This document shows positions 38,957 through 52,700 of a DNA stretch of 64,000 bases, one piece after another; the first letter of the stretch is position 1, and every line of letters starts with the position of its first letter. Origin of the DNA: Chlorokybus atmophyticus (taxonomy: Eukaryota > Plantae > Mesostigma and Chlorokybus algae); assembly GCA_009103225.1 (NCBI GenBank), contig RHPI01003366.1:1-64000 (forward strand). Reading direction: 5' to 3'. The position numbers and the translations under genes were made by a program. The notes below the pieces were generated by a model, which was not told where the DNA came from, ran no database searches, and saw only the letters and a program-made list of their open reading frames with translations.

Positions 38957-39429
38957 CACACGGCTTAACGTTCGGGGACCAGGTATGGTCCTTCCCAGTC
39001 AGAAAGCCAGAGGCCTTCCCTATGGCAGATTGCAGGAAATGGTCGGTCGAGATGGATGCTCGCGTCGTATGTAGGCCATGAGTAACGTGTGAGCATGGGT
39101 GAACTGGGGTGATCGACGCCCGTGGTGTCTGTAAGTTTATCATTGATTGTCGGCGGTGTTGGTAAGGTGAACAGCGTAAGTTAACGCCCGTTTACGAGCG
39201 GTGTTGCATCAACGATTGACTGTGTGCGTTGTTGGTTGTCGTTTGCAGTCGCCGTTGCTCACGGCAAAGTATATCACTGTCGTCGATGCGGAGGCGCCGG
39301 TGTACCCTGACATCAGCTTATGCCAACGGTGGTGGTATTCGAATTTGCAAGTGCAGATGAGGCGGGGTGTTTGCAGTGTTGGCTGGGCTGTGTGTTGTGG
39401 GCGGCGGCGTCGATGGCGGATGATGCTAG

Positions 39430-41160
39430 TCTAGCGTCGCTTTTGGAGGAGCAACGATAGAAGCTCGAGTTGATAGAGGCGGCGAGGAAGGGTCGCAATA
39501 CAAGCCAGCGTGACTATGCCAGGCGTCGCCGTGAGGAAGATAAGAATTATATTCAGCAGCTGAAGGAAGAGTGTGGGCTGGTGAAGTCTCGGATGAGCGC
39601 AACTGGCGTGTTTCTGCATGCATTGACATGTGGGAAGACTTGGAGATGGCAAGGAGATAACCTTGTTTTGGTTCAGGTGCGTTTGGAGGGTGCAGCGTGT
39701 GTTCATGCGTGTGTATTGTGTGTATCGTGCATTGTCTCCACCTGTGACTGCGGTTTGATTTGGCAGCTGATATGGATGAGAAGTGTTTTGTGCTCGACAT
39801 ACTGACTCTGATGTATTGTGTGAGCAGGATACCTTGCCGACGCCTGGTGGCGCACCTCTTGGACTATGTGCGCAGGTGAGGTGCGGTTGCATGCTGCATG
39901 CTGCGTAGCACTGTAGTTGGCTGCAAACCCGTGCTCAATGGTGCATGTTGCAGGAGAATGATGTTGAATTGGCTCTGTCGTCGTCTGATGAGGAGGAAGA
40001 TCAGGAGAACATCCATCAAGTACTTTCGCAGCGTAGGAAGCAGAAGCAGCATCATACGCCTCATCAGCAGCAAGTGCCACCAGCCTCTGCACTGCACCAG
40101 ACACCGCATTGCCATGTGCGCCATGATCAGAATGGCAACCGTGTCGTGTTGGGACCGGCCATGTCTCGGTTGAACACAGCGAGAGGCGTACCTAAAACGC
40201 CCAAGACACCACTTGGCACCTTGCCAGGTGGGCGCTTAGCTTAGCCTGATTTGCTTTGCTAGGCGGTACCCTGAGAGACCATGAATCATGTGTAGTAGAT
40301 GAGACGATGTTGTATACCTATTGCCTAAATGTGGATTTGAGAACTAGTTTCCACAGCTTGATGCATGTGTTGTGTGCAGACCAGGTTCGTCGTGCCAGCG
40401 TGCATGCGGATGATGCGTACAGACAGACCCGTGTGTTCAGCCAGCTGGAGGTATAGTGGGAGTGGGGGGCATGCAAACAAGTAAACATGCTGTGTAGTTG
40501 ATCCTTCAATGCACAGTCATCTTGTCAGCAGCTTGTGTTAGGTTCGATGTATTGGCATTCGATGTAGAAAATGGGGATGTGGTCTGTAAATTTGCCAGGC
40601 ATCCATACTCAAGTCACCATGTGGAATGGCAGAGTGGTATAAACAGGTGTCATTATAGTCTACATCACTATGTATGTAAGCATTTTTTCAACAGTAGTCG
40701 GCAGATTGCGAAATAGGGGACTACAGCCATATGATAATATATGCTCTGGGCGCCCAACCACTGTGTCTACGCAGTCAGCGACTTTACAAGTTTAGAGTTT
40801 GAGGGCGGAGATGGCTTCAGTCAAGCAGGGGAGAGATCGTGTACAACGCGACTTGGATGCGGCGCTGGAGAGGCTGCGTGTCATGGAATCAAGCGGCAGC
40901 TCCAACACCAACACTGCCTTGCAGAATGCCTTGCAGGAGTTGCTGCAGTTGCGCACACAATGCGAGGTTGGTGTTTGCCTAATCCTGTTTGTATGGTGTA
41001 TATTTGGGTTTGACTTACCTCTGGCTTGCATGGTGTAGGACTTGCGAGATCAGCTCACACAGAATGTATGTCAAGATGACCAACGCCGCGCAGAGTTCGC
41101 ACGGGCTGTTGGGGAACTGGAAGAGGAGTTGGATGCAATGACCCTGCATGCCGAGGTGAG
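39430..41160 (+). CDS. Probable 5' exons (coiled-coil rich) of the Academ transposase gene
   Basis: Exon-like ORFs (ELIEAARKGRNTSQRDYARRRREED..., LQENDVELALSSSDEEED..., RAEMASVKQGRDRVQRDLD...) bounded by AG/GT and leading to the AG at 41235-41236. Exact structure uncertain. Confidence 0.45.
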
Positions 41161-41236
41161 TGGGTGCACAACAATGCATGCAATAATATATTGACTATCA
41201 GAGGCCTCTATGTCCTGAAGTCGAACATATCACCAG

Positions 41237-44200
41237 GTGTTGGAGACCAGGGTGGGCGAGGAAGTGGACGCTTATAACGCTGAGAGGAGACACCGGCTGC
41301 AGGTGGAGTGCAATCTGTCAGGATACCGTGGCAAGTTAGTGGAGCTGGAGGACGTGATCGCTGGTCTACGTGAGACTGTGCGCACAAACAGGGCGTGCCA
41401 TCCATCGCAGCACGATGCACGTGTGGCGGACGAGGTGCGCCAGCTCTATGCGGACGATGTGCAGCGAGCAGCCAATGAGGACTGTCATGAACTTGTGGCA
41501 TGTGCGGTGAGAGATGTTGCTTCCCAGTTGCTGCAGAGGGATGCCGTTGTATTCCTGACTGCAGTAGCAGTCGAGTACAATATTGCACCTGCGCGTGTAC
41601 TGCTGCGTGCTGTGAACCAGCGCTTACCGGAAGCGGGTGTGGTAGTGACCGGCGCCAGGCAACAGGGTACACTTATGATTGCTGCTTGGGCCGATCCTTT
41701 GGCATGCCTGTTGCGCCATGGGATGAGGGTTACTGAGGTGCCGGCCAGCACACAGCCAACTCGTACGGGGACCAGCGCGGTTGATGGCGACCAACTGCCT
41801 GCTGCTGTACTTCGTCACCTGAACAGGGTTATGGAGGCGGAGAGGCAACGGCATGTCGAGCGCAACAGACAGGACCCTGATCTGCGCTGCGTGAATTGGC
41901 AAGAGGAGTGGGAGAAATGCGGACCTGTAGTGCGACAGTTGATGGGCACACTGACTGGCTACAGTCAGATGGAGCGATTGCCATCTTCTGGTCCCAAACG
42001 GGCTCGTGCTTTAACAATCCTGCGCAATAAGACCGTGTTCCTGATGCACTGTGCATTGTATGCAGGGAGCAAGTTTGCATACTCTCCATTGCATCTGGCG
42101 GTCACGGACGAGGTGGACACACATTCTGAAGGGAACAAGTTACTCAGGACCCTCAACCGCCTGGGTGTGACAGTAAGCCGAAGCCACATCGACCGACACA
42201 TACACACCAGGGCGCTTCACAATCTGAACAGCATCGCTCGATTGCAGCCCCGACGTGGTATACATGTGCTGGCATCAATTGATAATCTAGACATAAAGGC
42301 AGGCCACCAGGCACGCTACAAAGGCAGGAAAGCAGGAGACATCCATGCCACTTCAACTCAGCTTGTCTCGACAGTCGCTCGGATGCCTCCAGAACAACTG
42401 ACTCTGCAGGTGAGTTGTCAGCCCATGGTGATCAGGGAGACCAATTACTGCGAGTACAGGTCAGTCAAACTAGCATCTTGTGGGCAATCCATGTACTCAT
42501 TGTTGGTGTTGTTGCAGCCATCGAGGAATCGCACGCTGGCAGAGTCACTGGTGGCTGAGCCGTGCGTCAACAATATGCCTCCTCCTGCGCCCATGCAGAG
42601 AGCACCAGTTGTTGTGCGGAGCGATCCAATCTTGAACTTAATGCCTGAGGAGGTTGCGGCACTCGAGAGTTTCCAGAAAACGTTACACAATGCCGTGTTG
42701 ATGCGCATGCAAGAGCCGGACCATACATGTTTGCCAACACTTAAGGAGGATTGGGCACGGTGGCTGCAACTGGCCACAGGTAGAAGCACTGAAGTTGCCA
42801 ACGACATTGAGTACCTGCCTGTGTTGCCTTTCTGCCCTGACAATATAGAGAACCTCAAGTCTGCGCTCTTGCAACTGCGCGCCAAGGTTGGCATCACGGA
42901 TTCAACAAGCAAGATCTGTGTTACTGGGGACGAGAAGACGTTTGCCCTGATGCAAGCACTAAAAAAGGCAGAGCCGGGCTACTGGGACTGGGTGGTGCCT
43001 TTCCCTGGCGATTTCCATGTCCTGATGAACATGCAGCCCGTCATTATAAAGATGGCCTGGGACGCTGGTCTCGATGCTATGTCCTTGGAAGCCGGTTTTT
43101 CTGCAGCCACGGCACGCAATCACTTAGCAGACGGCTCTCATTGGAAGAAGATACACAATTTTTTGTGTAAAGTCTTGGAGGCACTGTACAGACATATGTT
43201 CAAGTTGTGGCAGCAGGCAGAAACCGCAGAGATTAAGAACTTGTGCAGAGCTGACCTGGAGGAGAACGGGATCAATGCCTCAAACTCTGCTTCCTTCTTC
43301 CGCGAATGGTGCGAGGGTCAGTGCAAGACCGATCATACCTGGCAGTTCTGGTGGAACTTCGTGAGCCGTGATATGCTGCATTACTTTGGGCTATTTTGTG
43401 GTGTTCGCCAGAGGATCTTGCATCTCCGACTGGCCAGCTGGAAGGGTCTGAGCCCGCTTCCATTCGCCTGGGATCGCTACCATTATTAGAAAGTCATGAC
43501 GCTGCATCTTGCAGACCTGCAGAGCATGCCGCGCTCTTTGCTGGATATGCTAGCCGAAGGTGGCTTTGCAGTCAGTCTAACAGGATCGGCTGGCAGACTG
43601 GTTGCTCTTGATGAAGCCCATGAGTGCCAGGTCAACAGAGATATGAAGATGTCACTGTGCAGGCCCACCACCGAGCAGCTCCGTCAGAAGTCATTGTACT
43701 TGGGGGAGCGCAGTCAAGCACACAAGCAACTAGAGCGTCAGCTACTGCTTGACAACAACCTGGTCAACAACGAGCTGGATGATGACGCCGACGACGACCA
43801 CGAGAGGGTAATGCGGACACTGGCTACCTACGCCGCCAGGTGTGGCAGCGATTTAATGCATCTTGCTGAGCTGCTGGAGAATACACAAGCCTTGGCAAGG
43901 CCACACGCGCTGCACTTGACGCATCTTACCACCGGGGTACCAGCGGCGGCTGCTGCTTCAGCAGATCTTGCGCGACACTACCAGGTTGGTGTTGAGGCCA
44001 TAAAGTCCTTTGTGGAGGTTGACGTCTGCCGCGAGGCACCTGCGTGCAAAGTCAGTCGCAGGTTCAACTTGAAAACAATGGCACCTGCTAAGAAGCGCAT
44101 GAGCAAACAGGCCACCGTGATCAAGCAGTACCGTCAAGAGATGTTGGTGGCCAAGCGCCTGGCTGCCAATGGTGCTAGTCAGGAGACCGTCACAGCAAGA

Positions 44201-45910
44201 TACTGCGAGCATCCATGGGCGCTGTTTGAGGAGCTCACCGGCAAGATGCGGTCTGGCGACAAGGCCAAGTTTATGGCGGAGGTAGCTCCTCTCGACAACA
44301 CATGCTGGAGCCGCATGTCCCCGCAGGGCGTGGAGTGCATCATCCTGGAAGGCATGTTCCTGATTAATCAAGAATGCCACATGCTGCAAGGCACCATCAA
44401 GGACTATATCCAACACCTGATGCGCATCTGCGTGCTCAGCCGGCTCGCCAATCAGACCGTGCGCAGCGTGCAAGTTGTGTTTGACACTCCACGACTCCAA
44501 ACGGGGGTCAAGTCTTCACTGCAACGCGCACGTGACGGTGCGGCGCAATCATCTGGTGGTCGTCTAACTCTGGACACTGAGCTGCCGAGATTGTGGCGGG
44601 ATGTGCTAAGAGATCGTAGCTTGAAACGATTTCTGTGTGAACTGATAACAGAGCACATGCCCAACATGATTGCGGAGTACCTGCACCCCGACCAAGAGGT
44701 TGTATTCGCTGGCGGGTCAGATATAGACGAAGTTGGAGACCTTGCGCGTGTCGTGGCACGCGATTCGGACAGCCCTGCACGCGTATATTTTGTGAACGAC
44801 TATGTTTGTAACCATGGAGAAGCTGACTCTGGCGTCTGGGTGCATGCGCACAAATGCCCCTACAACAACATCCTCATATACTCACCTGATACCGATGTGA
44901 CCATGATTGGCCTGGCGATCACCGACGGGTGGGATGCAGTGTTGAAGGACGTCACAGTACAGGTGGCACAGCACTCCAGTGGCTCCACTCGACCACCCTT
45001 CCTGCACTTGTCTACACTGCAACAACAAGTCAACAGCATGCACCAGGTGCAGAGCATCGCCACCGGGTTGCGTGGCTGGTGGCTTCTTCTAGTGTATGCA
45101 GCAACTGGTTGCGACTACACCTCATTCATTGGCGGCATCTCGAAACAGTTCATCTGGCGCACGGTCCTGGCACAGCATGCAACATTCATCACTAGCAATG
45201 TTAGTGTAGTGGAACATGAGATGTGTTTCGCTATACTGCGCCTCATTGGGTGCTCTTACTTCGAGAAGTACAGGTCCACCTTCGACAGCGGCACTCCTGC
45301 ATCTATGTACTTCGAGTTGCACGGGCCTGAATCAACCACCAGCGATAAGGGACGATTGGCAGACTGGTTAGAGGCGATCCACAAAACAGTGTGGAAGAAG
45401 ATTGCCACGCCACGAGATACCATGCCCACAGTCGATGCACTATGGCTGCATGCACTTCGCTCGGTGTATGCAGTGCAGATGTGGATGCAGAGCTGCAATG
45501 GTGACATGCACATGCCTGACTTGTCTGATTATGGTTTCACTGAGGTCGATGGGTTATGGACTGCTGTCCAAGATCTGCCAGAAAACATGGTGGAGGCGAA
45601 AGCTAGGAGGCAATTGCTGATGAAGGGTTGTGGATGCAAGACTGGACGATGTATCAGCAAGAGATGCAAGTGTCGCAAGGCAGGACAAGCATGCACCGAC
45701 AGCTGTTCTTGTTTGGGATGTGACAACCACGGCAATCACGTGGACGAGGACGCTAGTGCAGCTTCTTGTTGCCACATAACAACCCCCCCGCCCATGGTCA
45801 ACCCAACAGCCGAACAGTCAACACAGGCAATGGACAACGATTATCCAAATTCTGTCAACTCAGACAGTGATGAGGAAGACCTCACCATGATGGATATGGA
45901 CGACGTCTAG
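41237..45910 (+). pseudogene. Academ-like transposase + XPG/FEN1-type nuclease + CXC domain; one in-frame TAG
   Basis: ORFs 41237-43489 and 43496-45910 share a frame, separated by TAG 43487-43489. Motifs: SIDNLD, TGDEKTF, PGDFHVLMN and ALDEAHECQVN (candidate DDE set); NHGEADS, SPDTDV and TGCDYTSFIGGISK (XPG-I/H3TH-like); CGCKTGRCISKRCKCRKAGQACTDSCSCLGC (CXC). Confidence 0.82.
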
Positions 45911-46345
45911 GGCGGCCTGCTACTCTCGCAGAAGGCGCCGCGAGCAGCAAGTTCTACCATAGCCACCACGCCCCACTGCACCTCACCCGACCCGCCCAAC
46001 CTCCGGCAACCCAATCTACTGCACCTGTCAACGCCGCCGCCACCGGCAGCATCCTCATCCGCAACCGCCGCCGCAACCGCCGCCGCCTCCGCCGGATGCC
46101 CAAACCGCAGACACACAACCACCTCAACAGAAGGTGCCGGCACCGCCGCCGCCACCGGCAGCTTGCTCCCCCGCCTCTGCCTACACCCCCGCCCCCGCCA
46201 GCCTCGAGCAGAGATCTGTGCTGGCTGGTATGCAGCAAGCGCATGTTTTTAGGGTTTGCAACGCGTGTTTTTAGGGTAGTGCAGCTCAGCAACATGTGTG
46301 TTACATTGCAAGGCGGCGGAGTTGGCGGAGTGCAGTGGCACCAAC

Positions 46346-48106
46346 ATGGAGACGGCGGGCACGGTCAAGAAGGTCATGGTGTGTGACGTGTGCCATTCCT
46401 ATGTCGTCAACAACGGTCAGCGTTTGCGCCTTCAGAAACATCAGGCTCAGTGCAAGGCGTACCAGGAGCGCTTTGGATACACTGCCGCATGCTGGCATCA
46501 CCACGATGCAGGTCATCACATCCTGCACTGCCGAGTGAAGCTTAGGTGTGCGCAACCAGAGTTTTTTAATATGCAGTGCGCATGCCATCAGTGCGAAAGC
46601 TCTCTGTTTGAATGGCACGGCCTACCCATGCGATACATGCCTTACGTCCGCCCCACCACCATGATCGAAGGGATGCAATGCCGCCTGCTGGCGGTGAGTG
46701 GCACAGATGGCACTGATGATACTGCACGCATTTGTGCCAACACTAATACTGTATAAACAACTTGTGCGCCAGGGCCAGCGCGTGCGCTGCGGACGCGGTG
46801 ACGCGCAGACCGTTGTCATGCTGCCAGAGATAACGGCTGTTGCATCAGATTTCCTCGAGGTTGGTGTTTCAACGTAAACGTGCATCACACCTAGTGCATT
46901 ACACAACAGCATTGTAATTGTGGACAACCAGACTGAACGAGAAGGAACCGATGCCGCCAGCGTGCTGCGCCAGCGTTGCGCGCGCGGGGGTAATGCATTG
47001 GAGGGCCTCGATGTACTGGTGTACTGGCCGATGGACGAGACTTGTTATACCGGAGTCGTCTACATTCACAACCCACGCAATGGTGAGTTATGCACTGTCA
47101 AGAGCATTCACACGTGACACCGGCCATGGACTCAACGTAGCGCACTGCAATTGCAGGGCGCCACAGTGTGCGCTTTGTTGACGGCGACAAGCAGCATATG
47201 AAAATCGACAAGCACAACATGGTGGTTGTGTTCTGGCACCAAGGAGGTCAGTGTTGCCACCGCGTTGGTGGTCAGCGCGTACCCACTCACCGCAAGATCC
47301 CTCCGCCTCTGCCGTGTCTCCCGCTGTGGTCGTCATCAGCGACATTGCTGATGACACACACTCCTGTCAGAATGGAGGGCACACCGCACCGTCCCAAGGT
47401 CCTTGACCTGTGCTGCGGCGGGGGAGGTGCTGGGATGGGGTTGTACCGAGCAGGGTTCGACGTTACCGGCGTTGACATCAATCCACAGCCCGACCCGTTC
47501 CCCTTCATACAAGTTGATGCCCTGGTAGTCGACCTGGCGCCATACGACCTGATTTGGGCTAGCCCCCCTTGCCAGGCATATGCCCGATGCATTCCAGATT
47601 CACAACGTCACCAGCATTCCATACAATGGAAGCACAGCACACTGCTGCCATCGCTGCGATTGCGCCTTCATGAGTCAGGGAAGAACTACATCCTGGAGAA
47701 CATACCAAATGCTGCATGTCACATGCAGCACAACATGGTGCTGTGCGGCACCATGTTTGGACTGCCAATCTTCCGGCACAAGCTTTTTGAGACACATCCC
47801 AAGATGGTAGCCGACCTGGTGTGCGACCATACGTCCAAGAGTCTAGGTCCACTGTCGGGTCATGTGTCCAGCACTGCCAGCCGCACACTGACCAGCACTA
47901 CCCAGCAGATGTACCCCGTGTATGGCTCCGCTGCATCGCGCGGTACCATATCCGGCTGGTAGCAAGCATTAGGCATTGACTGGATTGATGCTGATGCCAC
48001 ACTCGTCGAATGCATTCCGCCTGCATACTCTGAGTATATTGGGCGGTGCATGTTGCAGGCAATGGGATACACATTGAACAGCGGCCCCATATCATGGGGC
48101 CGCTGA
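46346..48106 (+). pseudogene. Spliced Zn-finger-like - Tudor - C5 cytosine DNA methyltransferase fusion; one in-frame TAG
   Basis: N-terminal CDVC...LQKHQAQC. Tudor-like LEGLDVLVYWPMDETCYTGVVYIHNPRNG|RHSVRFVDGDKQHM across intron 47083-47156. MTase motifs KVLDLCCGGGG (I), GVDIN, WASPPCQAY (IV), ILENI (VI), LCGTMFGLPIFRHKLFE (VIII); after TAG 47960-47962, QALGIDW...ECIPPAYSEYIG (X), ending TGA 48106. Confidence 0.85.
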
Positions 48107-48429
48107 GTATCAATCCGCATGCCTATTTGTATTTGTTTACAAGTCAATTTGTACACTGGTGCACATTGATTCTCAATGCACATTTCCTGGTCAATATATG
48201 GTTGCAACCTTGCATGACCACAACATTGCATTCGCGCTCACACATCAACGTCAGTTTTCCACTGCCGCTCACACACAGCACCAGACATCCTATCTGCACG
48301 CCCATGCCGGTCTAACTACACAACGTCACCGTCCAGTTGATGCGGAATAGGGGACATGCATACACTGCGCGCAGTCACCTAGCGAGCAGACACACGTGTG
48401 ATGTACAAGTAGCTTGTTGCGTACAGTGC

Positions 48430-49720
48430 ACACTGCCTAAGAAACCACAGCTGCACTGGCATCATCACTGCCCTCCTAGCTGGTGTCACACTCTGCCTGC
48501 GATGGAGTCTCTTTGTCGTATGCACCAAACCACTGAGCCCCATACTCGGACTGGTCAGAGTCAGTGTCGTTGTCCATGTCTCTGAACATCTGGGTGAGGT
48601 CGTCGTGAGCAAGCATCCATTCCACAGGCTTGAGTACATGTGACCCAGGCACACAATACCATGATCAACATCACCCATTTGGAAGCGTCTACCTGTATCA
48701 TACCCTACCTGTCAAGCACCCTGATCCATATGCCTGGCAGACTGAATCACCACTGTAGCCGCAGCTTGCACATCGCATGCGACTCGCAACCCAGGCCACG
48801 CGCACGAGACAGATCACAACCCAGCTGGTCGGCATTCCAGTGCATATGCATACATCGATAAGGGGCAGAATACAACTGAGTCTCGTGACACAACACACAC
48901 CCAATCAATATATACACTCACCACATTAATTACAGTTGCAACACACATACGTGCGCACATACCAGGGTCTGCAGGCACGACAAGATCCCAACCTCCACCG
49001 ACAACTGCAAGGGGCGGGTGGGGCAAGCCAGGATTATCTGATTGGGCATCGTCGCCACCCTGCAGTGGATGCATGCTCCACTGACCGATCTCAAACGGGC
49101 TCCAATCAGTGTCATGCCACTGCTCAAGCCAATGCCGTCGCCTTCCAGGTTCCACATCACAATCAGTGGCGATCACCCAACGTGCCAGCACCATCCCACC
49201 CACCACATGCTCCAACACCAGCAGATCACTACTCAAATGCATTGGCCTGCCGCCTGCTCATCGAACCCTATGCAAGCTGTACCTAAACCCAAACCCACCC
49301 AAAAGCTCCACGTGCAGCTCCTTGACACCATCGCCAGACTGCACCCCTGACCCAGCAACCTGCAACGGCCAGCCTAGCGAAACCTACACAAGACCGGGGG
49401 ACAATATCACATGCCACGCATCCGCCTATACAGAGACCAAAGCAGCACGAAGCTGCACAACGACAAATCATGCACATTACTTAACGCTGACTCACCTGCT
49501 CGTATGCAGACTGGTAGAATGTGCTACTCCGATGTATGTGAGGGAGTGCCCTGCTGTCAGCAATAGTAACTGCCAAGGGGTTGTCGCCGCCCCCGCCGTC
49601 GACATCCATCACACCCACCCACCCAACACAATCGCCGCCCATCAGCACCCCGCCGCCCACCAGCACCACCCGCCAAGCAATGCCCCCATTCACGACCGAT
49701 ATATCAACACCAAACAAAAG
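48430..49720 (-). pseudogene. Third, unknown gene in the Academ element (degenerate)
   Basis: Exon-like frames NPLAVTIADSRALPHIHRSSTFYQSAYEQ|gt; LRAALVSV*ADAWHVILSPGLV*VSLGWPL...WLEQWHDTDWSPFEIGQW; LKPVEWMLAHDDLTQMFRDMDND. No family recognised. Confidence 0.4.
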
Positions 49721-52700
49721 TCAGCACGCTGATATCCACCGGACGGCGGCAACATTCACATCCGACCAACAGCGTCAACCGCCGTTTACTTAACAGAACC
49801 ACACGCACCTTCCACCATGCAACAGCGTTAAACATCGCATGACCATGCGTGGACAACAGCGTTGTGTCGACCACTCAACACGCTCAGCCGACGCTGATCG
49901 ATCAGCGCAGACACTAGACAATGCACCGTTGATCACCCGATCAACTACAACCAGGTCAGCGGTGTCAATAAACGTTGCAACACCGCCATCCCACGCGTTT
50001 CAGCAGACCAACACCAACAGCAGCCGCGCGCACAGCGCTGCCAGGCCTGGCCTAAGCTTTGCCCGGCGAGAGGCCTCTGGCTTTCTGACTGTTCCACGGA
50101 CCCCGCGGACCATACATGGTCCGTCCTCCGCGGGCCAGGATTGCCTGGTCCGCGAGGGACGGACCGTTCCTGGTCTGATCGGGGCCCCGAATCCTGGTGC
50201 GCAGTCGCGCACTAGACATGGTGCGCGGCCGGACCAGGTTTGAAACCGGTCTGAATTATCGCGAAAAATCGGACCATGCATGGTCCACAGCCGGACCAGG
50301 CATATTACCGGTCCGACTGTCAATGGGTGTACGGACCTTGCGTGGTCCGCACTCCGTTATTGAAGAGACCGTGCATGGCGCCTTTTGGTCCGTGGTGCGG
50401 CTAAGCAAACCCTGATGTACGAACCATGCATGGTGAGCTCCCCTCGTCCCTTGCTCCATCGTGACACGCTGCTACTCGTACTGATCACATGGATCAGTAC
50501 GAGTAGCCAACTGTACACGTCAGCAATGCACAGTGCTTGGACTCATCAGGGGAGACAATCAGCTGGCTGCTTGTGACTGCACCCACATGCTACCGCCGAC
50601 AGCGGAGGTGCTGGAGCAGCCTGCTGCCCTGAGGGAGGCGGCGCTGGAGGCGGCGGTGTTGCGTAAAGGTGTTCAGTTGTTCACTGCATGCCCCATTGTG
50701 GACGCTGTGCTGTTAAGTTTGAAGAGCTAATGTGTAACCTGTAACAGCAGCTACTACTTTGCAGCAACAGCGGCTCCTGCTGCTGCCGCTATCAGAGTGT
50801 GCTTGTTGTCGTTGATGTCGCTATTGTTGACCATGCTGTGATTGAAGCTGTTGCTGCAGCCTGTCATAGCATTAAAAACGGTTAGCAACAATTGCAGCTG
50901 CAATGTTGACAGTCGCACTGTTGACAGCCCTCGACTGTCACTTGGGAAGGTTAGCTACTCTAGTGAATGACTGTTGACAGCAAGAACTGCTGCTGGAGTG
51001 TCCGCTCCTTAAAACCTTCAGCCGGTAAGCTTGCTTGCTTGCTCTTATGCTTTGCTGCTGACTTGTTGCCAAGTCAACGGAGGTATGCAGCATACTCATG
51101 CTGTCCAGCCGTTGTTGAACTGCATGCATTCAGCTTAGTGTGCACTCGGCGAGCTAGCTTGCTTGCTTGCACAAAGTAGAGCTTATACACACCTCGTGCA
51201 AGCAGTCACACATGTGTTTGCTTGTCTATTGTTATGCTGTGCATTGCTTGCATACATTAAGCTGAACGGTATTGCAATGCTAATGCAATAGTCAAGTTTA
51301 AGTGCGCCAACTACTACTCCCATTGCATGAAAAAATCAGCGACTGAGTGTGCTTATAAGCTTTGTAAGCTAGAGGTAATCCATGCTCGCCTAATCATGCT
51401 CACCCCCTCTGCGTTTCATTCCGTAGGTGTATATGCTGGGCGCGCAGGGCAGGCTCACCCGGCTGCGCAGGCTGCTCACCCCCTTTACGTTTCATTCCGT
51501 AGGTGTATATGCAGGGCGCGCAAGGCAGGCTCACCCGGCTGCGCAGGCTGAGCAGCGGGGTGATAAATGCTGCTGGCGAGGCGTATGCACATACACTTCC
51601 GGCGTGAGGGCATATGTGCAAGGAGGACGACTCAGTAATGGCGATAAGCGTGAAGGTACTTGTACAAACACGTATGCACGCACACACACGCAGAGACACG
51701 CATGCACACATGCGCATGGGTGTGATTGCATGTGTCTGCGTGGCACTGCATGGCATGCAAGTACATGCACGCGCACACTCGCTGAAGCACAAGTAGTGTG
51801 GCATCTGCATGCGTATTCTCTATGTTTTGCTCCCCTCTCCCACCCTCGTTCCCCCTGTTATTGTACTTACCTTCCTCCCTGCCCCTCCAACACAGCCGTT
51901 CCCACGAAATCTGCAGCCTTCCACTGTTGGCTGCCGACAGTCGGAGACTGTTATTCATCTATCCCACAGCACTTCCCTCGACAGCCCTCCGCTGTTGTCG
52001 ACAGTCCTTCCAACAGCACTAACAACAACCGACAGTCTACGACTGTTGGTGGTTGACAGTCGTTCCAAGCATCCAGCGCCTTGAAGGTGCGCGCAAAGGT
52101 CTGTACTCTGGTTGGCGTTTGCGCATCATGCACGGCAAATGCGCAGGCCAAGGAGGCTTCATCGCACACTGTCGCAGGTGAGTACTGTGCTCCTACTCAT
52201 GCACACACAAGCCTACGCACAGTACCGCGCGTGCATACAAACAGTGACAGTCCCACTCCCTCGCGCACGCACGCACGCTTACTTGCATGTACATACGCGT
52301 GCAGGCCCTACAATATACTGCATCTATGCTTGCCACTTCTACGCTTTTGGGATAGCCGAGCTCTCGGAAAGCACACAAAGTGCACCGGTAGGGTGTATTG
52401 TCGCTCCCTCGCTCTACCGAACCTCGGCTACAACATCAACAGGTAATGCGTGTGTATGCATGCGTGGTGTACATGTGGTTTGCGTGCACGTTTGTAAGTG
52501 TGTTATTGCACAAGTGCCTAGTATGTATTGGTTTGCACAATGTGCACAACACGGTACCTCAAGTGAGGGTTATCACCAGCACTTTCAACAACAGCAATAG
52601 CTACCAACAACAACCATCACAACAACACGCGCTCAACCTTGACAGCCGAGGGCTGTGGGAAGGGCTGTCCTTTCGACAGTCCTTAGCTGTCAATGACAGC

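Follow-up and report, generated by a model that had tools for sequence, protein, structure and literature searches.

Cytosine methylation is usually viewed as a host weapon against transposons. Algal retrotransposons are known that carry C5 cytosine methylases of their own, namely SymbioLINE-Dnmt, SymbioDIRS-Dnmt3, and the Dnmt3-bearing elements of Klebsormidium (de Mendoza et al. 2018, PMC5890265). The giant-virus-resident DNA transposons Mariner-1_OLpv and Mariner-2_PGv also hold a methyltransferase (Bao and Jurka 2013, PMC3627910), and TET/JBP dioxygenases are encoded by fungal DNA transposons from 11 lineages, between which they move (Kojima 2025, PMC12730594). Transposons with epigenetic enzymes are in this sense a known kind of element. 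Here, we describe an 11.1-kb element at positions 38996-50091 of a 64,000-nucleotide stretch of the streptophyte alga Chlorokybus atmophyticus (assembly GCA_009103225.1, contig RHPI01003366.1, positions 1 to 64,000, forward strand), which is referred to as the window. Its second gene joins a Cys/His-rich N-terminal region, a Tudor domain, and a small C5 DNA methyltransferase. We read the locus, with a probability of about 0.6, as a decayed AcademX-like cut-and-paste transposon with this putative reader-writer gene as its cargo. What is new is the Tudor-fused small C5 methylase in a cut-and-paste element, of which no description was found in the literature searched.

The window element resembles the retrotransposons in being an algal mobile element with its own C5 methyltransferase, and one of the retrotransposon hosts is likewise a charophyte. 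The retrotransposon enzymes lie inside the retroelement coding region and are mostly of the eukaryotic Dnmt3 type, whereas the window element has the terminal inverted repeats (TIRs) as well as the target-site duplication (TSD) of cut-and-paste transposition and a separate methylase gene of phage/giant-virus type, fused to a Tudor domain. Like the two Mariner elements, it is of the cut-and-paste type, has a C5 methylase gene as its cargo, and is linked to giant viruses. Those elements belong to the Mariner superfamily, pair the methylase with a restriction-type endonuclease, lack a chromatin reader, and reside in viral genomes; the window element, in contrast, is Academ-like, has no endonuclease partner, encodes a Tudor fused to the methylase, and is found in the genome of a cellular organism. 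A preliminary description of the locus held that transposon-borne methyltransferases occur mainly in retrotransposons. The algal cases agree with this view, but the giant-virus Mariners are a precedent among DNA transposons. The fungal elements, too, have a gene for a DNA-modification enzyme aboard DNA transposons. TET/JBP removes or oxidises 5-methylcytosine (5mC) in fungal hosts, which has been read as escape from silencing, whereas the enzyme of the window would write 5mC in a streptophyte alga. As for the 'orphan' DNMTs from viruses, they are said to lack companion domains (PMC12344493).

The borders of the element are sharp. Exactly two copies of the 21-bp TIR (CAGTCAGAAAGCCAGAGGCCT) are present in the window, inverted and 100% complementary, compared with 0.01 matches expected by chance in shuffled sequence. 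The same four bases abut both ends, in agreement with the clean TIRs and TSD first reported. The methylase gene lies inside them, as was also claimed: it directly follows the transposase (stop at 45910) in the same orientation, and the right TIR comes after it. The framework of the element is as follows.

38992-38995, no strand: left TSD copy, TTCC; the same four bases abut both TIRs
38996-39016, plus strand: left TIR, 21 bp, 100% complementary to 50071-50091
41237-45910, plus strand: transposase frame of about 1555 codons with one in-frame stop at 43487-43489, containing DUF6589 and a tesmin-type CXC domain as well as a putative PIN/XPG-like nuclease region
50071-50091, minus strand: right TIR, 21 bp, inverted copy of 38996-39016
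50092-50095, no strand: right TSD copy, TTCC, directly abutting the right TIR

Five predicted exons with GT..AG borders give the second gene one 480-codon frame, interrupted by a single TAG at 47960-47962. A closely similar sister sequence (X1), whose contigs over the region are mostly 95-99% or more identical to the window, was used for comparison. The parts of the gene model are listed below.

46346-46693, plus strand: exon 1, encoding from the start codon on a Cys/His-rich N-terminal region of 116 aa with 10 Cys and 10 His (gene model)
46773-46859, plus strand: exon 2, 29 codons, phase 0/0 (predicted only)
46932-47082, plus strand: exon 3, encoding the Tudor domain's first half, with homology from about 46986 (gene model and 7DE9 alignment)
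47157-47246, plus strand: exon 4, second half of the Tudor domain with the F-x-D-G-D pocket residues (alignment to the RDM15 cage)
47247-47339, plus strand: 'intron 4', 93 nt, in frame and stop-free; read-through keeps the frame
47340-48106, plus strand: exon 5 (gene model)

Introns 1-3 break the frame, so the protein results only when they are removed. Homology supports intron 3, as the alignment to the Tudor structure 7DE9 (below) runs gap-free across the exon 3/4 junction; it is the only predicted intron with such support. Skipping of exon 2 would also keep the frame. In X1, position 47247 is a C, so that the GT donor of 'intron 4' reads CT and is destroyed, and this segment is probably a Pro-rich coding linker rather than an intron. 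The gene had been called spliced; exon coordinates, borders, and frame bear this out, with homology for intron 3 only and with intron 4 in doubt. The X1 contigs span the introns without joints and behave as DNA. Just 5' of the start codon, X1 lacks 22 bases (46244-46265), where the window has a short tandem duplication (...gtttttagggt... twice).

The peptide spliced from exons 3 and 4 matches the Tudor domain of Arabidopsis RDM15/PDS5C, solved with histone H3 monomethylated at lysine 4 (H3K4me1; PDB 7DE9), with an E-value of 1.9e-6 over peptide residues 19-67, whereas the Pfam Tudor models gave weak matches only (0.04). In RDM15, the cage is formed by Trp616, Tyr623, and Tyr641, and Asp643 and Asp645 select monomethyl-lysine (PMC8184781). 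These five residues align to W, Y, F, D, and D, respectively, in the window protein. The match across the exon junction and the retained pocket support the Tudor-like domain proposed earlier, and the claim that the methylase is joined to a chromatin reader is reflected in the single predicted frame containing both. Tudor domains of the RDM15/PDS5C type are reported in charophyte PDS5 and plant MSH6 (bioRxiv 10.1101/2025.05.08.652912), a distribution that fits capture from a streptophyte host. RDM15/PDS5C has, like the window protein, a single Tudor of this sequence type, and it also links H3K4me1 to DNA methylation. RDM15 does so by recruiting the RNA-directed DNA methylation machinery without a catalytic domain of its own, whereas the window Tudor is fused directly to a methylase. 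Such fusions were sought with a query composed of half the Tudor, the linker, and the methylase, using HMMER against 1.84 billion cluster representatives (50% identity). This exhaustive search returned 3518 matches, and among the best 150 none spanned the Tudor and none exceeded 50% identity.

The N-terminal region encoded by exon 1 consists of 17% Cys plus His. No family was found for it in Pfam, PHROG, or NCBIfam and no word-sharing homologue, and its Atlas relatives reach no more than 0.87 with low recognition. The zinc-finger-like N-terminus of the preliminary description is borne out in its composition but not by any family or homologue, and 'zinc finger' is a guess.

The C-terminal part of the protein has the motifs of a C5 DNA methyltransferase, located in an alignment of 37 sequences.

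47372-48103, plus strand: compact C5 DNA methyltransferase domain (motifs, homologues, profile, and fold)
47405-47428, plus strand: motif I, DLCCGGGG
47570-47572, plus strand: catalytic Cys codon in motif IV, PPCQ
47696-47701, plus strand: E-N of ENI, motif VI
47774-47782, plus strand: RHK of motif VIII (RHK.FE)
47960-47962, plus strand: in-frame TAG, read as CAG (Gln) in X1

The family consensus has DLFCGxGG (motif I), SPPCQ (IV), ENV (VI), RHRxFE (VIII), and AMGIDW...AIPPAYSE, and all of these are present in the window protein. Specifically, DLCCGGGGAG aligns with DLFCGxGG, G18 and G19 being invariant; in ASPPCQ, P65 and C67 are invariant, as are E109 and N110 of the motif VI ENI. The C-terminal GIDW...IPPAYSEYIG block is present as well, with IPPAY lying 3' of the TAG. 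Hence, of motifs I, IV, VI, VIII, and X listed initially, the first four are seen together with this block.

Searched alone with Pfam and NCBIfam, the pieces of the window copy gave sub-threshold methyltransferase matches only, the N-terminal piece of the broken copy reaching an E-value of 0.033 with Pfam DNA_methylase. The window methylase matches PHROG 363 (phrog_363, 'DNA methyltransferase') at 1.7e-19. A word-indexed search yielded 3393 homologues; most of the matches listed are about 210 aa long, 45-55% identical, and flagged with PF00145, a family matched by 35 of the 37 aligned sequences. The family profile matches the solved C5 methylases 3G7U (5e-7), DNMT2, M.HaeIII, and M.HhaI, and it meets DNMT1 in motif I only, at 0.009 or worse. 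An AlphaFold2 (AF2) model of the part before the stop (predicted local distance difference test score, pLDDT, 79) puts C5 methylases at the head of the Foldseek list, with the prophage enzyme 3G7U first (4e-6). No large DNMT was found among the 3393 and 3518 sequence matches, all of which are small proteins of phage/virus type. By these sequence comparisons, the window methylase belongs to a small (about 210 aa), phage/prophage-like family and not to DNMT1, DNMT3, or CMT, as had been proposed; the homologue lists and the profile give no grouping with DNMT1, DNMT3, CMT, or DRM, and the tree described below covers the small relatives rather than eukaryotic DNMTs. 3G7U, a DNA modification methylase of prophage CP-933R and the best solved match by both profile and fold, has the same catalytic core, as do the members of PHROG 363. 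These proteins are bacterial or phage and lack eukaryotic reader domains, and 3G7U is longer (376 aa). A DNMT survey used a PF00145 cut-off of E below 1e-4 (PMC12344493). The family does not reach this cut-off (0.033 for the window piece), so such surveys may miss it.

The closest sequence relatives are P0001, P0123, and P0124, with 46-51% identity. Like the window protein, the best-scoring relatives have extra residues inserted between motifs IV and VI and are extended by a C-terminal tail. In a maximum-likelihood tree, the window sequence groups with these three (ultrafast bootstrap 97, SH-aLRT 86), in agreement with a quick tree, and P0138, P0129, and P0241 join them in a seven-member clade (97/90). 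P0138 is encoded on a 245-kb contig, where its neighbour is a gene for DNA polymerase B; at a distance of about 9 kb lies the large subunit of an RNA polymerase, which bears an intein. The contig of P0124 has genes for an mRNA triphosphatase, protein kinases, topoisomerase II, and YqaJ. We take both gene sets to be typical of giant viruses. Viral contigs, many of which measure 40-60 kb, encode the wider methylase family in abundance, with 258 confirmed relatives in IMG/VR. As the two clade members whose genomic surroundings could be read lie on giant-virus-type contigs, the gene is likelier to have arrived through viruses than to have been captured directly from prokaryotes, and the immediate source of the methylase is, by sequence, more likely a giant-virus lineage. 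The enzyme was earlier taken to be prokaryote-derived; the family is of phage/bacterial type, but its nearest kin here are not bacterial (P0124 and P0138 being on giant-virus-type contigs).

P0001 and P0123 have a methyl-CpG-binding domain (MBD) inserted inside the methylase, and an MBD is encoded by the open reading frame (ORF) beside P0124. At the P0124 locus (L004, 9239-10534), the MBD lies in the next ORF, as if the gene had been split. Besides the tail and the extra residues before motif VI, these proteins thus share with the window protein a reader-plus-writer logic. They differ in that their reader is an MBD in or beside the methylase and in having neither introns nor a Tudor, whereas the window protein has an N-terminal Tudor and no MBD. 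Neither the methylases of P0001, P0123, and P0124 that embed or adjoin an MBD nor any 5mC reader built into a viral 5mC writer was found described in the literature searched. P0121 and P0122, from Logan and JGI contigs, consist of two tandem small-methylase copies (441-471 aa; cluster of 19 members); they scored highest in the exhaustive search, and their halves are placed in different parts of the tree.

The window copy is broken in both genes. Past the TAG, 47 codons continue with 52% identity to the C-terminal end of P0001 (2e-14), so the stop interrupts an otherwise continuous methylase. X1 has CAG there, the sense codon looked for in a sister copy. At 47781, X1 has AGG (Arg) where the window has AAG, which restores RHR, and three extra bases after 47492 turn PQPDPF of the window, in which a conserved Tyr is lost, into the consensus PQPEYPF. 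X1 therefore keeps the family state at all three methylase lesions, and some other copy or strain has a version that looks intact. Besides the one TAG reported at first, the window copy has thus lost the Tyr, the second Arg of motif VIII, and, through a nonsense codon, the integrity of its transposase; it is dead in both genes. Between 43400 and 49300, 10 of the 24 listed C/T-type differences from X1 fall at CG, compared with 20% of cytosines being in CG context, and over the window as a whole the observed/expected ratio of CpG is about 0.7. These differences are consistent with CG methylation and deamination in the genome and are not specific to the element.

The two transposase ORFs (41237-43489 and 43496-45910) share one frame. 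Pfam matches the first to DUF6589 (5.9e-9) and the second to the tesmin-type CXC family (TCR, 8.8e-6). The last 199 residues of the first are 39% identical to the homologue P0291, and the stop at 43487-43489 aligns with a Gln of P0291 with equal spacing on either side (DRYHY*KVMTLHLADLQ versus DRVHYQKLIPHHLADLQ). Hence, the two ORFs make up a single transposase of about 1555 residues that is interrupted by a nonsense codon, and the element is non-autonomous too. Its Atlas neighbours are eukaryotic, mostly from arthropods, and one is a 1555-aa DUF6589 cluster. The second half has EAD, ILIYSPDTDV, and TGCDY motifs in common with both homologues. We take EAD, SPDTDV, and TGCDY to resemble FEN/XPG active-site motifs, although Pfam gave no XPG match. 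The AF2 model of this region is poor (pLDDT 51); its weak fold matches to Xrn1, FEN1, GEN1, Exo1, and XPG (Foldseek E 6e-3, Z 4.6-6.2) are tied with unrelated folds. A nuclease in the transposase is plausible. AcademX elements have 3-4 bp TSDs and encode a nuclease (PMC10045372), and the window element has 21-bp TIRs and a 4-bp TSD. Assignment to AcademX is thus plausible from the duplication and the nuclease-like motifs, DUF6589 and CXC being the sole other family matches. The Academ-type label of the preliminary description fits in its TSD and motifs, and is less secure in that the XPG fold matches are weak. A KDZ/Plavaka transposase was rejected, given that Pfam reports DUF6589 and tesmin-type CXC and no other family.

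The remainder of the element comprises two internal stretches. The 5' 2.2 kb (39017-41236) contain short ORFs with basic, acidic-Ser-rich, and coiled-coil-like stretches, and probably hold upstream transposase exons. The other stretch is listed here.

48107-50070, no strand: 3' internal region of about 2 kb without a recognisable gene, GC skew -0.24 (strongly negative)

Several ORFs of 46-207 aa lie there on both strands, and no Pfam family was found across the ten ORFs scanned, nor an OTU or other cargo gene. The element is inserted in a patch of short GGACC...GGTCC palindromic units (38970-38995 and 50096-50190), which may be another repeat or a preferred target.

We propose the following working of intact copies. 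The Tudor domain would dock the enzyme on nucleosomes marked with H3K4me1. In plants, this mark is found on transcribed gene bodies. The pocket of RDM15, which the window Tudor appears to have as well, ties H3K4me1 to DNA methylation. The methylase would then write 5mC nearby, using for catalysis the cysteine of PPCQ, the glutamate of ENV, and the RxR motif. The methylase module would derive from giant viruses of a lineage whose version of the enzyme has an MBD, and the Tudor from the streptophyte host. The transposon could benefit by tuning its own expression or transposition, or by having its insertion sites dressed like methylated host genes; an H3K4me1-guided 5mC writer could serve it in these ways.

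Several points weigh against this reading. Both catalysis and H3K4me1 binding by a protein of the window type are what we infer from its residues, and RDM15 Glu647, which contacts H3R2, corresponds to Gln in the window Tudor. Expression, splicing, and the presence of Tudor and methylase on one transcript are unproven predictions, since no RNA run holding the stretch was found and X1 is the single public run matched. No second copy of the element lies within the 64-kb window. The methylase tree is unrooted and does not tell whether transfer went from virus to transposon or the other way, and the contigs of P0001 and P0123 have none of the viral hallmarks checked. Finally, the listed changes between the window and X1 in the methylase gene are about 8 non-synonymous to 4 synonymous, against 6 to 6 in the transposase; the sample is small, and the ratio suggests weak constraint on the methylase.

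A broader proposal is possible, which we advance tentatively: Cys/His region, H3K4me1-type Tudor, and C5 methylase may form a mobile cassette of giant-virus ancestry that passes between DNA transposons of at least three superfamilies in a streptophyte alga, and intact copies of which would write 5mC at H3K4me1 chromatin. Somewhat unlikely is that the gene is a passive passenger, captured or transduplicated by transposons and carried without serving them while most copies decay. The window copy is broken in at least three places, its changes relative to X1 run at about 2:1 non-synonymous to synonymous, and the spread of TET/JBP among transposons was itself termed 'passive' (Kojima 2025, PMC12730594). 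X1, in contrast, retains every conserved catalytic residue and an open frame at the visible sites, and the reader-writer architecture looks built rather than accidental.

It is improbable that the methylase gene came from a separate mobile or viral fragment that landed in the Academ-like element. The giant-virus-type contigs of its closest relatives and the approximately 2 kb of unexplained sequence 3' of the gene would agree with such an origin. However, neither a second inverted-repeat pair nor a duplication bracketing the gene was found inside the element, the predicted spliceosomal introns and the host-type Tudor set it apart from its intron-less viral relatives, and the X1 contigs carry transposase and methylase at similar divergence. 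Least probable is a role other than on DNA, as an RNA methylase like DNMT2 or an inactive scaffold that brings the Tudor to chromatin: DNMT2 scores about level with DNA methylases in the profile and fold searches, the substrate of orphan DNMTs is not assignable from sequence (PMC12344493), and no target-recognition domain is recognisable between motif VIII and the C-terminal motif in the 37-sequence alignment, but the catalytic motifs are conserved, the family is abundant on phage-size viral contigs and has a prophage DNA modification methylase as its best structural match, and an MBD in or beside the three nearest relatives is sensible only for DNA 5mC.

Under the favoured reading of a cut-and-paste transposon with a reader-writer cargo gene, elements that bring a writer of their own and target it through a reader of histone marks would, for this class of transposons, turn around the picture of methylation as a host weapon. 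The locus would also add a route from giant viruses to transposons for the 'orphan' DNMTs, and it offers a natural, compact fusion of a putative H3K4me1 reader and 5mC writer that is directly testable. If the gene is in addition a cassette exchanged among transposon superfamilies, it would be the writer counterpart of the TET/JBP erasers borne by fungal transposons, and transposons would shape the methylome of their host, for example by dressing insertions like methylated gene bodies or by timing transposition.

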